64,000 nt of DNA from Adineta vaga. Its lineage: Eukaryota > Animalia > Rotifera. The notes under the pieces were generated by a model. The model searched no databases, had not been told where the DNA came from, and saw only the letters and a program-made list of their open reading frames with translations. The stretch spans positions 5,642,001 to 5,706,000 of the forward strand of contig CP075496.1 of NCBI GenBank assembly GCA_021613535.1, given 5' to 3'. Each line of letters begins with the position of its first letter. Positions within the stretch are counted from its first letter, which is position 1. Made by a program: the position numbers and the translations under genes. Shown piece after piece: positions 1 to 42,820 of this stretch.

Positions 1-558
1 TTAGGTCCTTGTTGGACAGATGACATTGTGCCTTGGTTTGATGCTGACCGTGTTTGATTTCCTCCAGTTGTATTATTTGTTCCCACCGTAGAAGAACGAG
101 CATTCGAGGGATACATAGAAGACTAAAATCAAAATGAGAAAGATTATTGTAATGTTTTAATCGGAGAGAATCAAATTTACTTCAACAATAGCTGGATCGT
201 GTGTAATTGTACTTTGTGGAGGTTCTCGAACTTGTAAATCTTCAATGTCGGCACCGCGAAAAATAATATATTCAAAGATCTCATCACGAGCAGGTACAGG
301 TCGATCCGTTGGACGATCTTCTGTACCAAAAGAACGCACTACAAGTTCAATGAAAAGTAAAAATCAATATATTATATTTTCAAAATATTTACCTTTAGAA
401 AGTGCTACAGTTGATTCATTGGCATCAATTGTATATAAAATACCTTCATAACGAATTTTAGCTTTGGAAACAAGACTAATTTTTGAGCCCAAATAAGGTG
501 AATCAGTTGCTCCAGTTGCAGATGGTTTTTTTATAGATGAATTATTTGTTAAGCTCAT
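1..558 (-). CDS. LSM14: LSM14/Scd6/RAP55 P-body protein, 5' part (runs off window start)
   Basis: Spliced exons 558-393 and 338-~181 give [25 protein letters not shown]...[35 protein letters not shown], the diagnostic LSM14 N-terminal Sm-like domain; GT-AG introns. Confidence 0.95.
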
Positions 559-36021: not shown

Positions 36022-39000
36022 ATGACTCTATTATTCGACAATACGAACTATGGTGCAGCAATCAACATCTCATCAGATGGTCTTAGTGCACGACGAACAA
36101 ATGGATTTGCTAATGGCATTGTTTTTACTAATCGTTCAATAAATATCTTTGAGAAAATCACATTCGAATTACAACAACAACAACCATCGCCAATCTGGCA
36201 AGGTTCATTACGTATAGGTTTATATATAGATCAACAAATACCTCTCGGTGATTTACCATTATCTACGATGGAAGCAAATTTAAGTTCATCCTATAAAATG
36301 ATTTCTTTGGAGAAATATGAAAATCTATATAATGAAATGCGTGTTACCGTTTGGTTAACACAAAATAATTCTTTAAATTATGCAATTAATAATGTTTTAC
36401 GTGGAACATTAATTGAAAATCTAACATTCGATGAAAATAATAATAATGAACTTCTTCCACCTCGATTAATTTTTGATCTATATGGTAACACAACTAGAGT
36501 TCAATTGATTCGAGATGGTAAAATCAATGAAAATTATGTCTTCTAATCGTGTTGCATTGTTTTTCTATTGTAATATAGGTGATATAGTTCCATATGAAAT
36601 TAAAGCTCGAGGACTTGATGCTATACGACACTTTCAGACAGCATGTGATACGGGTACAACATTGGTTCGTCGAACTTTGCTTTTATTGATTGGACCTAAA
36701 TTATGTGGAAAAAGTTCTCTAAAACAAATTCTTGTATCTAATCATGATTCAAATGACAAGTAAAACACATCAAATTTCCTTTTCTCTCATTGTTTTCTGT
36801 GCTTTTTCTTTTTTGCCATCCTTTAGTGATAATTTATCTTCGGATCTTTCATCCTCTTGTTCGATTAATATTGATCAAACACATACATGGTCATTATCAA
36901 AAGCGAATTATAATCATCATCATCATCATCATCATCGACAATCAACTCATGATTCATTAAAAACAATGATTCAAGATTTTGGTAGATATACAAATATTAA
37001 AAAATGATGATTTTATTTTTTAATTAATTTAGATGAAAATGAGTCATCAAAATCAATTACTCAACAACGTGAATATGAATCTCAATTAGTTCATAATATA
37101 ATTCTAAATTTATTAAAACGACGTTATGAATTACATACCGTTCATGAAAAGAAAGATAGAGTTTGTTGAATTACACTTTTTTTCTGAAAACAAAATATAA
37201 TTAATATGTATCTTTGTATAGAATTGGAAAGAAACTTTATTAGATGACTTGAAATTAGTTTATCCAAGTCCGATGGTTCCTTTATCAATCCGTTCATTAG
37301 TCGAAAAACAATTAGCACAAACGAAATCGATAGATCCACATGCTGTACTGACAAATTTAATGTCTACTACAGGAAAAGCGAAAGAAGACAAACCACAAGA
37401 GTATGAACGTCTGCGTCTTGATCTTTGGGACATGCCAGGATCAACATCATCATGTGGAATAACACATCAAGTTTGATTAAATGAAAATCTTTTTCTTTTT
37501 TTGGTTTATTTCATTTCTTAATAGATCTTTTTATCATCACGAGCAATTTACTTACTCGTATTTGACTTAACAAAAGACCTTGATCAACCCTGTGAATGGA
37601 ATAAGGTAATTACTTTCAACATATGAAATTCAAATCTTGATTTAATAATCTTTGGGTAAAAACTAAAAATAACTGAGAAAATGCCAGTCAAGGTTATATA
37701 TCGAGATAGTAGAAGTCTTTTTCTATTCGCTTCATTTGTATATTATCTAGTGAAACGTGAAATAACTCTTTTACCTTTGGTAATTCTAAATGACAGATGT
37801 ATTTTCGTTTTTGTATTTAGGAAATAACGAACCTCGATCATTTAAGTTATATAATGCATTCTATTTACTGTTATTCGGCAAGTATTAATCAAGGACGAAC
37901 AAATGATGAAGAAGTAGATATTCCTCGTTTATCACCACCAATTCTTCTTGTTGGTACACATCGAAATTTATTACCAAACTCAACTAAAAAAGCAATGGTT
38001 AGTTTCTCTAATACTTTCCTTACGAAACAAGAAAAAAATTCCTTGATATTTTATAGATTGAAAACAAAATGGCTACAATTCGTGCAATGATCGCTACAAA
38101 ACCCTATTTTAAACATGTCATTGAGCCATATTTTACCATCGATACACTTCGACCCGATGCTGCTGATATTGAACAAGTAATAGAAAACAAAATGACTTCA
38201 TCAATAATCACATTTCTACTTTCAGATTGATCATTTGAAACAAACTATTGAAGAACTTGCTTTAGCTGAACCTTATATTTGTGAACAAATTCCAACACGA
38301 TGGCTTCATTTTGAAAATGATCTTAATCGATTGAAAAAACAACAAGATAATTTCTATGCTTCACTCGATCAAGTAAATCATATTTATTTCGATGAAATTT
38401 TCCTAAACTATTTTTCTTTTCTTTTTCTTTTTTTGTAGGTTTGTGAAATTGCTCGTACGCAAGATATTTGCTCTTCCGATGAATTAAAAACTTTGTTAGA
38501 TTTTTATCATGATCTTGGCGTGATTGTTTATTTTGGTAATACACAAGATATGTTTCTAAAAAATACACTTATCCTTCGTCCACAAAAACTTATTCAACTT
38601 ATCAAACGTCTTGTTTGTAATAATAATAGTGAGAACGAAAATGATGATGGAATTATTGATGAACGAACATTTGAAAATCTTTGTCAACCATTTATTGAGC
38701 AAAAACAAAGTTTATTAGCATTATTAAAAAAATTTGATCTTCTTTGCGAATTCACACCATCGACATCATCATCGACAGCGGCGACAACCTCTTGTAAACA
38801 ATACTATGTACCTGGTTGTATTCGAAGAGTTTATAATGAAAAAATTCCAATAGAAAAAGACGAACAATCCGTGATGTTTTACTATTTATTTGATAGATAT
38901 TTTCCAGGTAAATTTTAAATTGATGTGCATTTGTATTTCATATAAAAGTAATTTTTTTGTTTATAGAAAGTCTTTTCCATCAAATACTTGTTCGAACAAT

Positions 39001-40989
39001 TAAATGGACACAATTAAATCATGTTTCAACACCAAAACTCTATTATCGTCGTGGAAAATTTATTCTAGATGATCAACATTTACTGATTTTAACTGCATCT
39101 ACAATGAAATATTCACGAATGAAAGTACAAATTATTCGTACGAATCCAAATACAATGACAAATAACAGTACAACAACTCCAAATATAACTACTATTGCAA
39201 GTAATAGTACTAAGAATCAAGATGAAGTTAATCCTCAATTAGCTGATCCTGTTATTGTAGCAAAAGTAAGTTTTCTTTTTTGATTCTTGCAAAGAGTTTT
39301 CATTGAATTCTAATTTAGGTTCGAAAATTTCTTGAATCATTGTTAAATGATATTAAATCCACATGGATACGTCGTCTAGCATTTCAATGTATGGTTATAT
39401 GTCCGTGTGGAAAAATTTGTGATTTACATAAAACTCCTTATTGTTCAAATAATATATGTCTACATTTTTTGAATCTTGATCATTGTCTTTCAAATCCAGT
39501 AAGTTCTCGTTTGTTTTTATTTCAATTATCTTTTCTTCATTATTTTACCAAATATGTTTTTAAAAGATTGTTGAATGTTCATTTCGTCGTGTACCAACAA
39601 ATCAATATCGAAATTGGTTTCCGAAATTAACCACAACACGTGCTGTACCAGTTATTGATATATTGTACGATCAAAAATCAATGAATCATTTTTTTGAAGA
39701 TTCAAATCTTCCCGGTTGGATACGTTCAACTGCAAAACTTCTTTCGACAGCAGTTGTTAATATAAATCTTAATAAGTCTTCGAGTGAAAATCGTACATGG
39801 GTTATTTTAGCAAAGAAACTTGGTTACCAACAATCTGTTATCGATCAATTTGCTCTTAGTCGAAATCCAAGTTTACAATTAATTACTGACTGGATTGTTC
39901 GAAGTGGTAATTCATCATTAGCTGTTGACATGTTACTTGCAACAATGAAACAAATTGGACGTGATGATTTGGTGGATATTATATCACGAGAACGAGAAGC
40001 ACAAAATTCTCTACCATCAGTTTTTATTAGTTATCAATGGGATATACAAGAGGAAGTAAAAGAATTACGAAGTTTTTTAGAATTGGTTGGTTTTACTTGC
40101 TGGATGGATATGGGACAAATTGGTGGTGGAGAACTTTTATATGAAAAAATTGATCATGGAATACGAAATGCTAAAGTAAAATATAAGAAACTATTTTAAT
40201 AAGATTTTGTAATACAATGATTTGTCTCGATTAGGTCATTATATCTTGTATAACACCAATGTATATTGTTTCAAATATGTGTCGACGTGAATTGATTCTC
40301 GCTGATATGTTGAAAAAACCGATTGTACCAGTGATGTTTGAATTAACACCATGGCCACCATTGGGCGCAGCAAGTTTAATCCTTACACAATTAGCTTATG
40401 TCGATTTGAAAGGTAAAATTGCTTTTTGTTTTCTCTTATCATTGATATCATTTGAATTCATTTAATTCTATCAGGTGCTGGTGGACATGGTGGTAGTGGT
40501 AAAGCTGCTGATTTACAAGCACGTTATAATGAAATTGCATCCATGGTATCTCGACATACAACATCATCATCGCCGAGCACATTTCGTCGATTAGTACATT
40601 CATCTTCACTTGATAAACGTGGTACTAGTCATCCTTCATCTAATTTAGCAGCATTGACTACTGCACGACATACGAAACAAACACGAAATCATCAACGTCG
40701 TAATACGACTTCACTCAATTCAAATGAAAGTTCGAATAGTAGTATGAGTGAAGATGAATATGACTATGATTATAATGAAACTGATGGTAGTGATCAGCAT
40801 GCTCGGCCAATTGAGCCCATATTAACTGCATCTAATATTGGTCCACCTGTTGCTGCATCTCTAAATCAACCATTTCAAATTCGTAGTTCTGTTCATTTAG
40901 AACATCGTCTTGGTCCAATGACAAATAATTATTCTCCACCAAATGTTAACAATTCTGTTGCTAGTTGTGCTGTTTGTAGCATTCTGTGA
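36022..40989 (+). CDS. Roco-family protein: Neuralized(NHR)-Roc GTPase-COR-Cys-rich-Death-TIR, ending in a CaaX box
   Basis: NHR (YGAAINISSDGLSARRTNGFANGIVFTNR...WQGSLRIG), P-loop GPKLCGKSS, G3 LWDMPG, IFLSSRAIYLLVFDL, G4 LVGTHRN, COR (EQIPTRWLHFE; FYHDLGVIVYF; ILRPQKL), death domain (WVILAKKLGY...LITDW...IGRDDLVDII), TIR (VFISYQWD...CWMDMGQIGGG...CRRELILA...PIVPV), terminal CAVCSIL*. Confidence 0.9.
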
Positions 40990-41740
40990 TGAATTTATTT
41001 TATTCTGTTGTTGTTTATTCGAAAAATATTTATATTGTGTTCAATGATGCTGAAAATGATGAATTTTTGAATAAAGAACAGAGATTAATAAAACATCTTT
41101 GAGTATCTAATGGAATAAGATGACATTTTCCTTTTACTAATTATCTTTCCTTTTTCTTTTTTTATCAAAATTGCTGACAAAAACATGTTTCCTATCATTT
41201 ATAGAATCTCACTAATTAAGTTTCAAAGAATATTCTCGTCATTGAATGATTTTACTTCTGACGTCAAAGAATATTTTTGTAAACCATCAACTCATTATGA
41301 TGTCGTTTTATTTCATCCGAATGATTATAGCTAACGGGACGAATCAAAACAAAATGAGATTAATAGATTAGACGTTGACATGATTCAAATCGCAATGTAT
41401 TAATGAAAAAAGATAGAATTTCCACAGATGCGTGGTATATGATAAGAATAGAAATAAATAGGAAACGACCTCGAAAAAAGCATCTTTAATGAAATATATC
41501 TTGTTACATTCGATGCTCTTTTGAATCATACACATGTATTCAATGAAACTTAATTTTCCTAAGAATCAGATTTCAAGCAAATAATATACTTTTGTATGAA
41601 TGAGTCAGAAAGCTCGTGACACCTATTGTTGTTGTTGTTGTTTTTCTTTTCTTTTATAATGTTAATGTACGTAACAGTGTTGCACAACAACGTTGCAATA
41701 TCATCATATCATCTTTATTTTGTATTTATTTCTCATCAAC

Positions 41741-42820
41741 ATGATGCAAATAGTAGGTGCATCAGACAAACTACCGGATATTGGAGATGATTTCTATCAT
41801 GATGATAATCAATCGACTTTATCCTTTTCAACTCAAGAACAAATATTAAGTGAAGATTTACCGCCATTGGAAATTGTTCGTGAAATGATTAAATATGAAA
41901 CAACTTTACGTTTATCAGAACCCATTCAAGATCTTTTTGATCTATATCATCAAGATGATAAAGCTATAACGTAAGTTTGTACTGACTATATAAATAAGAA
42001 ATTCTCTCTTTTGACAATCAATAGAATGGTGCTGGACTTCGTACAAAAACATGTTGTAGAACATTTTGGTTATAAACATGTCAATGCTTTACGTACAGCT
42101 GTCTCGCGTTTTCCTGATGATCCAGTGATTAAAGAAGCTTTCTATAGTAACTAGAAAAGTAACTACTAGTCAAAATATAACGAAATAAATTTTATATTTT
42201 AGTCAAACATAATAAGATAACTCAAGGTCTTGTCAATCAAGGTCAATGTGTACAAGATGTCAATTTATTTACTGTAGATGGACAACCAACTACGCTTTTC
42301 TCTCAAATTAGTCCTGGTCAACCCTTAGTTCTCTTGGCCGGTTCAACTACATGACCTCCATTTCTGGCGGCTGTCGAGCGAATAAAGTAATCTATTGACT
42401 TCTTGCTTTCTTTTATTTAACTACATAGTTAATTATTTATTAAGTGCATTATTCCGCTCACATTCGCCAGTTATGCGTCTTTTGACAATTTATATTGCCG
42501 AGGCGCATGCACGTGATCAATGGCCAGCTGGAAAAATTATTTCATGTCATGATCAACCAAAAACATTAGAACAACGTTTGACAAATGCTCGAAACTTTCA
42601 AAAAAAATATAAATTCGAAATGCCAATGCTTGTAGATAGTATAGATAATACATTTCACACAACATATGGATCATGGCCATTTCGTTTCTATGTAATTAAC
42701 GATGGAAAATTAGTATATAAAGCTGAACCAGGTGAAACAACCTATGCTTATGAAATGGATGAATTAGATCAATGGATCGAGAACTTCTATCGAGAAAAAG
42801 GAATTGAACAAAAATCTTAA
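41741..42820 (+). CDS. Iodothyronine-deiodinase-like selenoprotein (Sec at TGA 42352-42354); exons 41741-41970, 42025-42146, 42203-42386, 42445-42820
   Basis: Spliced frame reads ...PGQPLVLLAGSTT-U-PPFLAAVERINALF...TIYIAEAHARDQWP...QPKTLEQRL...LVDSIDN...YGSWPFRFYVI, matching deiodinase PLVxxxGSxTUPPF, YIxEAHxxDxW and YGAxPxR motifs. Confidence 0.92.

Follow-up and report, generated by a model that had tools for sequence, protein, structure and literature searches.

A kinase-less Roco protein of the rotifer Adineta vaga that joins Neuralized, Roc-COR, Death and TIR domains to a predicted lipid anchor

Gene structure and domain organization

We analysed a 64,000-nucleotide stretch of DNA of the bdelloid rotifer Adineta vaga (contig CP075496.1 of assembly GCA_021613535.1, positions 5,642,001-5,706,000 of the forward strand; referred to as the window). 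The subject of the analysis was a gene on its plus strand, at 36022-40989. A preliminary description, made from the letters alone, had placed here a Neuralized homology repeat (NHR, a SPRY-like domain), a Roc-COR GTPase module, a Cys/His cluster, a death domain as well as a TIR domain, followed by a CSIL end, all in one gene. The window is AT-rich (GC about 30%) with very short introns, and is eukaryotic-type DNA. When the 15 exons, which are open stretches in alternating frames, were joined by script from the window DNA, a single 3984-nt reading frame was obtained that encoded 1327 amino acids. The introns were GT-AG in 14 of 14 cases, and 13 of them measured 49-68 bp. Intron 6, of 215 bp, is three to four times as long as the others and has no recognisable coding content.

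The spliced model was identical in 1327 of 1327 residues to a GenBank entry, "hypothetical protein I4U23_018830 [Adineta vaga]", that was found through a search with a rotifer ortholog. In other species the whole protein is encoded by an uninterrupted open reading frame (ORF) of 1238-1305 aa on contigs of 4.2-6.3 kb, which we take to be transcript assemblies. Because the GenBank model is identical, orthologs are colinear and the ORFs elsewhere are uninterrupted, the region is, as far as its sequence and that of its relatives can tell, one gene and not two transcripts, as the preliminary description had it. An artefactual fusion of a neighbouring NHR-Roco gene with a Death-TIR gene is highly improbable: besides the independent annotation and the single ORFs, at least 57 orthologs have the same architecture from end to end, splice phases are continuous across the exon junctions, and no stop or start signal lies between exons 12 and 13.

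Pfam was run on the single exons and then on the full database protein I4U23_018830, as were the other searches. At the exon level it detected Neuralized (1.5e-19), COR-A (8.7e-15), Death (3.8e-10) and, on two exons, TIR_2 (1.8e-8 and 1.1e-4). Roc escaped the single-exon run because its sequence is spread across seven small exons. On the full protein it was detected, and the order there was Neuralized, Roc, COR-A, Death, TIR_2. All the elements named in the preliminary description were present where it had placed them (Table 1). Its reading of the protein as a Roco without a kinase was borne out, as Pfam gave no kinase match on the exons or on the full protein. Hence, the protein kinase domain of the LRRK/DAPK Roco kinases is absent by Pfam. 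The protein also does not have the layout of the Neuralized E3 ligases, which carry NHR repeats and a C-terminal RING; Pfam found a single NHR and no RING.

The NHR lies at the extreme N-terminus and matches the NHR1 structures of Drosophila Neuralized (2yue and 4kg0, E ~3e-6). For the death domain the nearest solved sequences were those of p75NTR and NRADD (~7e-7), followed by RIPK1 and MyD88 (~0.01).

Table 1. Features of the gene and its surroundings. Positions are those of the window, unless a different contig is named. Identity is the mean for A. vaga against non-rotifers in the alignment of 57 orthologs.
Feature	Residues	Position	Strand	Basis or remark	Mean identity
Exons 1-8		36022-36517, 36579-36759, 36827-36981, 37033-37160, 37222-37470, 37525-37605, 37821-37997, 38057-38176	+		
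Exons 9-15		38226-38372, 38439-38907, 38967-39265, 39319-39498, 39567-40175, 40235-40412, 40475-40989	+		
Intron 6		37606-37820	+	215 bp	
NHR	9-163	36046-36510	+	Pfam PF07177, 64.6 bits, 1.2e-17 on full protein	23%
Roc GTPase	~196-529	36668-38176	+	Exons 2-8; Pfam Roc 31.5 bits (cutoff 27)	32-37% (core, two segments, and COR-A)
P-loop GPKLCGKS		36692-36715	+		
Roc insert		36885-37401	+	~135 residues, between switch I and G3	12%
G3 DMPG		37429-37440	+		
G4 THRN		37956-37967	+		
COR-A	552-687	38292-38765	+	Pfam PF16095, 66.2 bits (cutoff 35.3)	32-37% (with Roc core)
COR-B	~700-905	38802-39599	+	AF2 fold match of the orthologous region; includes the Cys/His cluster	
Cys/His cluster	862-898	39400-39578	+	CPCGKICDLHKTPYCSNNICLHFLNLDHC...C	45% (Cys/His part of COR-B)
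Death domain	943-1038	39711-39998	+	Pfam PF00531, 37.4 bits (core 969-1035)	39%
TIR domain	1044-1185	40014-40560	+	Pfam TIR_2, 70.9 bits (1046-1157)	54%
BB loop GQIGGGEL		40113-40136	+		
Met at the WxxxE Trp position	1112	40277-40279	+		
Glu of CRREL	1116	40289-40291	+		
EE loop GGHGGSG		40480-40500	+		
Low-complexity tether (C-terminal tail)	~1191-1319	40576-40962	+	Non-conserved	6%
Last 12 residues					47%
CAVCSIL + stop		40966-40989 (CSIL + stop 40975-40989)	+	CaaL prenylation box, second Cys three residues upstream	
Two AATAAA polyadenylation signals		41070-41092 (at 41070 and 41087)	+	Pattern search; ~80-100 bp past the stop codon	
Neighbouring downstream gene		Starts near 41741			
Coiled-coil-Death-TIR-TIR-CaaX gene		L002:433-2088 (= G000:C4 ~7.675 Mb)	-		
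Coiled-coil-Death-TIR-TIR-CaaX gene		G000:C4 ~7.683 Mb			
Coiled-coil-Death-TIR-TIR-CaaX gene		G000:C1 ~10.657 Mb			

Distribution and conservation of the family

A HMMER search with exon 13 against 1.8 billion representatives returned 449 matches. Eight long matches were scanned with Pfam, and all eight had the architecture Neuralized-Roc-COR-A-Death-TIR_2. A full-length search yielded more than 100 colinear relatives. Judged by the source names, the family occurs in bdelloids (Adineta, Rotaria, Didymodactylos), nemerteans, annelids, many molluscs, Priapulus, the centipede Strigamia and ticks, and also in echinoderms, hemichordates and amphioxus, with a Saccoglossus kowalevskii entry bearing the name "neuralized PATS1". 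Among the family search matches there was no name of a vertebrate, an insect or a nematode, which is not proof of absence. In the 100.8-Mb A. vaga assembly the gene was single-copy.

Conservation was assessed on a set of 57 full-length orthologs from about ten phyla, which had been picked by means of the CxxCxxL end. These sequences align colinearly from end to end, far beyond chance, and share the Cys/His cluster, the GGHGGSG loop and the CxxCxxL end. The G and K of the P-loop, and the D and G of DxxG, were invariant throughout. The TIR domain is the best-conserved part (Table 1), and the mean column identity in the ortholog TIR alignment was 67%.

The combination of neuralized, Roc/COR, Death and TIR_2 had been reported for Strigamia and Crassostrea in a paper on sea anemones (PMC5094078), and a figure of the Aplysia immunome paper draws NHR, ROC, COR, Death and TIR among the TIR- or COR-containing proteins (PMC9334734). 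The preliminary description knew of no characterised protein with this architecture. That stands for function, since the literature searched held no functional study of the NHR-Roc-COR-Death-TIR family; the architecture itself is widespread and had already been noted in silico. The gene is, therefore, the rotifer member of a known but functionally unstudied family, and its architecture is not new.

It may be noted that many of the orthologs are automatically named 'non-specific serine/threonine protein kinase' in UniRef, although they have no kinase domain. A rule-based mis-annotation seems to be spreading here from the LRRK-type Roco proteins. In a protein of the flatworm Macrostomum lignano (P0038, 1845 aa) the Cys/His cluster, Death and TIR_2 lie close to the N-terminus, with about 1400 residues behind them and no CaaX; this protein is a relative that has been rearranged, or else the product of a wrongly assembled gene model.

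The TIR domain

From nine ortholog TIRs a profile was built and compared with solved structures. The best match was Cat1, a CRISPR-associated NAD+ hydrolase (NADase), at 8e-9, and the bacterial AbTir, PdTIR and TcpB as well as SARM1 (~4e-6) were also recovered. The TIRs of TLRs scored far worse, and at E <= 1 no MyD88 TIR was among the matches. The AlphaFold2 (AF2) model of an orthologous TIR (pLDDT, the predicted local distance difference test score, 83.8) has the canonical order of five strands and five helices, with GGHGGSG as the loop before helix alpha-E. In fold it comes nearest to the TIRs of SARM1 and SPARTA.

When the A. vaga TIR was aligned with AbTir, E208 was matched by Glu1116, G174 by the BB-loop Gly and W204 by Met1112. 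The Glu of CRREL, to which the preliminary description had drawn attention, is thus at the position of the catalytic Glu that TIR NADases carry in helix alpha-C, and it is invariant in the 57 orthologs. So are the Cys-x-x-Glu motif as a whole, the His of GGHGGSG, and the BB (GQxGGG) and EE (GGHGG) loops. The position of the Trp in WxxxE, on the other hand, is unconserved and never aromatic in this set, being occupied by L, H, N, M, S or V. By its sequence, then, the TIR belongs to an enzyme-like clade and keeps the Glu, but is without the Trp that is the second hallmark.

Mutation of this Trp lowers the NADase activity of SARM1 and abolishes the activity of L6 and ROQ1; the Trp is required for cyclisation of ADP-ribose, and an aromatic residue occupies the position in all cyclase-active TIRs surveyed, less consistently in the non-cyclising or inactive ones (bioRxiv 10.1101/2022.05.07.491051). 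The suggestion that this is a SARM1-type NADase was overstated: the Glu is invariant and the nearest relatives are of the NADase type, but the Glu alone is insufficient and its partner Trp is missing. We put NADase activity of this TIR at about even odds, and if it is active, a non-cyclic product would be more likely.

The Death+TIR pairing had been likened to that of MyD88. The order is indeed the same. The TIR type is not, as it is TIR_2 and resembles those of SARM1 and bacteria, with GQIGGGE in the BB loop instead of the box 2 RDxxPG of MyD88-type adaptors, and the death domain is nearest to p75NTR/NRADD.

In TIR-TIR interfaces the BB loop is joined to the EE-side surface, and scaffold TIR filaments share such an interface. 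Because both loops are invariant among the orthologs, we read them as evidence for a putative head-to-tail assembly of the TIR domains.

The Roc-COR module and the Cys/His cluster

The Roc domain has the G1, G3 and G4 motifs expected of Roco proteins, the last residue of G4 being N and not D. Among solved sequences it is nearest to the Roco of M. barkeri (4wnr) and to the Roc domain of LRRK2. Among the 57 orthologs G4 reads THxN in 36 and THxD in 14. The switch-I Thr is kept in 49 of the 57 and the Gln after DxxG in 34; bdelloids carry Asn (Asn228 in A. vaga) and Ser (Ser394 in A. vaga) at these positions. Replacement of Asp by Asn in the NKxD/THxD motif of classical GTPases moves the preference toward xanthine nucleotides. 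Given the THxN G4, the nucleotide preference of the family may be unusual. The insert between switch I and G3 is poorly conserved, and that of A. vaga contains a run of seven His.

COR-A and COR-B follow directly after Roc, as they do in Roco proteins. The Pfam match for COR-B was below threshold (15.5 bits), and when a profile of COR-B with the Cys/His cluster was compared with solved structures by sequence, no match was obtained. The fold search alone succeeded: over about 200 columns, the AF2 model of the orthologous COR-B-Cys/His region (pLDDT 85.8) matched the COR domains of three Roco proteins, those of Chlorobium tepidum (3dpt, E 2e-5), LRRK1 and LRRK2.

The Cys/His cluster noticed in the preliminary description is a genuine signature of the family. 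Its nine positions (C, C, C, H, C, C, H, C, C) were invariant in 14 orthologs, the motif is present in most family members, and related echinoderm Roco proteins hold a reduced version of it, CPC...C-H-L-L. We considered whether it forms an independent zinc-finger domain, and rejected this, as the AF2 ortholog model puts it within the COR-B fold. Because that model aligns with Roco COR domains over about 200 columns, the cluster is, on the model, no separate domain but an addition to COR-B within its C-terminal part. This insertion probably binds zinc.

The C-terminus and the Death-TIR-TIR-CaaX proteins

The protein ends in CSIL followed immediately by the stop codon, so that the X of the CaaX box is L, the residue that specifies geranylgeranylation. 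Almost all complete orthologs close with C-x-x-C-x-[IVL]-[LIVM], and a CaaX end is also conserved in the Death-TIR-TIR sister family described below. The extreme C-terminus is conserved beside an unconserved tether of about 130 residues (Table 1), and this speaks strongly for use of the CaaL box, with lipidation as the predicted result. The CSIL end pointed out in the preliminary description is thus confirmed as a conserved element.

A. vaga also has three intron-poor genes, with ORFs of 551-554 aa, in which a coiled-coil is followed by Death, TIR_2, TIR_2 and a CaaX end, CSIM (Table 1). Their TIRs share the signature FxSYQW...CWMDxGxMGGGD...CxRE with the Roco protein. Longer Death-TIR-TIR-CaaX relatives were found in hemichordates, echinoderms, nemerteans and molluscs, phyla in which the Roco family also occurs. 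The sister family is laid out as a variable N-terminal region, then Death-TIR-TIR, with the CaaX usually placed after K/S-rich residues. These proteins are possible partners of the Roco protein.

Discussion

The gene model, the domains and motifs, the family, its conservation and the affinity of the TIR for the enzyme type are direct observations. We consider it probable that the gene represents, as a single copy in A. vaga, an ancient family of bilaterian Roco proteins without a kinase, in which a geranylgeranyl-anchored Roc-COR switch has Death/TIR assembly as its output. In such a protein, geranylgeranylation at the CaaL Cys, perhaps with palmitoylation at the upstream Cys, would attach the molecule to the membrane on its tether, and the SPRY-like NHR at the other end would bind a peptide ligand. 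Roc-COR, a G-protein switch and dimerisation module, would link the state of ligand and nucleotide to whether Death and TIR are exposed or clustered. The output would be a higher-order assembly through Death-Death contacts and head-to-tail contacts between the BB and EE loops of the TIRs, and the coiled-coil-Death-TIR-TIR-CaaX paralogs may be taken into it. The assembled TIR could act with or without hydrolysis of NAD+. The GTPase-gated oligomerisation at the membrane that the preliminary description had proposed is what we likewise infer. Strong conservation, the single copy and the lack of expansion point to a role in conserved endogenous signalling or cell death, by analogy with SARM1, rather than to a fast-evolving pathogen receptor.

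Some features weigh against this account. The WxxxE Trp is missing in 57 of 57 orthologs. The loss of the switch-I Thr and of the Gln in bdelloids, together with the THxN of the family, suggests that nucleotide specificity and hydrolysis may be atypical.

What the assembly does may be read in different ways. Death and TIR could serve as MyD88-like homotypic scaffolds that recruit kinases or other TIR- or death-domain proteins to the membrane without any enzymatic step, and this we hold to be a plausible reading that falls a little short of an even balance. The Death-then-TIR order, the weak match of the death domain to MyD88 and RIPK1, and the missing Trp of the catalytic site are all in keeping with it, as is the presence, in the same phyla and in the same genome, of Death-TIR-TIR-CaaX paralogs with the same type of TIR as possible partners. 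It sits less well with the invariant Glu and neighbouring Cys and with surface loops that have changed very little in more than 500 My, which are more typical of an active site, and with sequence neighbours that are enzymes and not MyD88, MAL or TLRs. The same invariance of Glu1116, the conserved Gly equivalent to AbTir G174, and the nearness of Cat1, AbTir, PdTIR and SARM1 in sequence and of SARM1 and SPARTA in fold would suit a SARM1-type NADase, with NAD+ depletion or an NAD-derived signal as the main output of GTPase-gated oligomerisation. This we advance only tentatively. We know of no NADase activity for the TIRs of TLRs, which keep the equivalent Glu. Moreover, the Trp is replaced in every ortholog, the very residue whose mutation impairs SARM1, L6 and ROQ1 and which is aromatic in every cyclase-active TIR tested (bioRxiv 10.1101/2022.05.07.491051).

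The protein could also be imagined as an NLR-like innate immune receptor whose NHR recognises pathogen molecules directly. The layout of sensor, NTPase switch and effector does parallel that of NLRs and of the bacterial Roco/AP-GTPase conflict systems with TIR effectors, and SPRY-like domains in TRIMs recognise viral proteins (PMC8195603). The gene is single-copy in the A. vaga assembly, however, and on this ground a lineage-specific immune expansion was rejected. Across phyla there appears to be about one locus per species (an impression from species names, not a count), and the domains are colinear over about ten phyla, the NHR at a mean identity of 23%, with no sign of expansion seen. A directly pathogen-sensing receptor is accordingly distinctly improbable.

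A bolder proposal, and in our estimation a rather unlikely one, would make the whole pan-bilaterian family a TIR enzyme that is tethered to the membrane, gated by its G protein and atypical in its active site, having the Glu without the WxxxE Trp and invariant Gly-rich BB and EE loops. If this were true, animals would possess a second lineage of regulated TIR executioners, consuming NAD(P) or producing a nucleotide signal, beside SARM1; such a lineage would have been lost in vertebrates, insects and nematodes, and so overlooked. The unusual THxN of G4 might further point to a preference for a nucleotide other than guanine. The rotifer gene itself is ordinary, being annotated as a hypothetical protein in a family already visible in databases. 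[quoted passage not shown] For functional study it offers the CaaL end, the Cys/His insertion of COR-B, the invariant Glu with the missing Trp, the invariant BB and EE loops, the THxN G4 and the co-occurring Death-TIR-TIR-CaaX sister family as handles.

Comparison with known systems

The closest counterparts are the members of the NHR-Roc-COR-Death-TIR_2 orthogroup, such as Strigamia T1IR33, Octopus LOC106875913, Branchiostoma LOC109482588 and Saccoglossus 'neuralized PATS1'. They have the same domain order, Cys/His cluster, TIR signature motifs and CxxCxxL end, and show 37-53% full-length identity to one another. The bdelloid copies differ in their divergent NHR (23%), in the lost switch-I Thr and post-DxxG Gln, and in a His-rich, low-complexity Roc insert.

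SARM1, AbTir, Cat1, PdTIR and the SPARTA TIR-APAZ have the closest TIRs by profile and fold, and their catalytic Glu and BB-loop Gly align with those of the A. vaga protein. SARM1 and the bacterial TIR NADases also place an oligomerisation module upstream of the TIR. In contrast to them, the A. vaga protein is without the WxxxE Trp, and its Gly-rich BB and EE loops are unique to its group. The regulator of SARM1 is ARM-SAM instead of Roc-COR, and SARM1 has a mitochondrial targeting sequence where the rotifer protein has a lipid anchor. Like MyD88, the rotifer protein has a Death domain followed immediately by the TIR, but this TIR is TIR_2 and lacks a MyD88-like box 2, the death domain lies nearer to p75NTR/NRADD, and the protein is about four times larger and adds a GTPase switch.

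With LRRK1/LRRK2, DAPK1 and MFHAS1 it shares the Roc-COR-A-COR-B tandem and a THx[D/N] G4, and its COR-B matches the fold of LRRK1/2; DAPK1 likewise pairs Roc-COR with a death domain. Unlike these animal Roco proteins, it has no kinase, LRR or ankyrin, its Roc carries a large insert and its COR-B the Cys/His insertion, and its outputs are TIR and CaaX. The Aplysia proteins LOC101848126 and LOC101845043 (MBT-EF-hand-Roc-COR-TIR-TIR-CaaX; PMC9334734) are also kinase-less Roco proteins with a TIR output and a CaaX end, but they differ in the sensor domains at the N-terminus, carry TIRs in tandem and lack a death domain.

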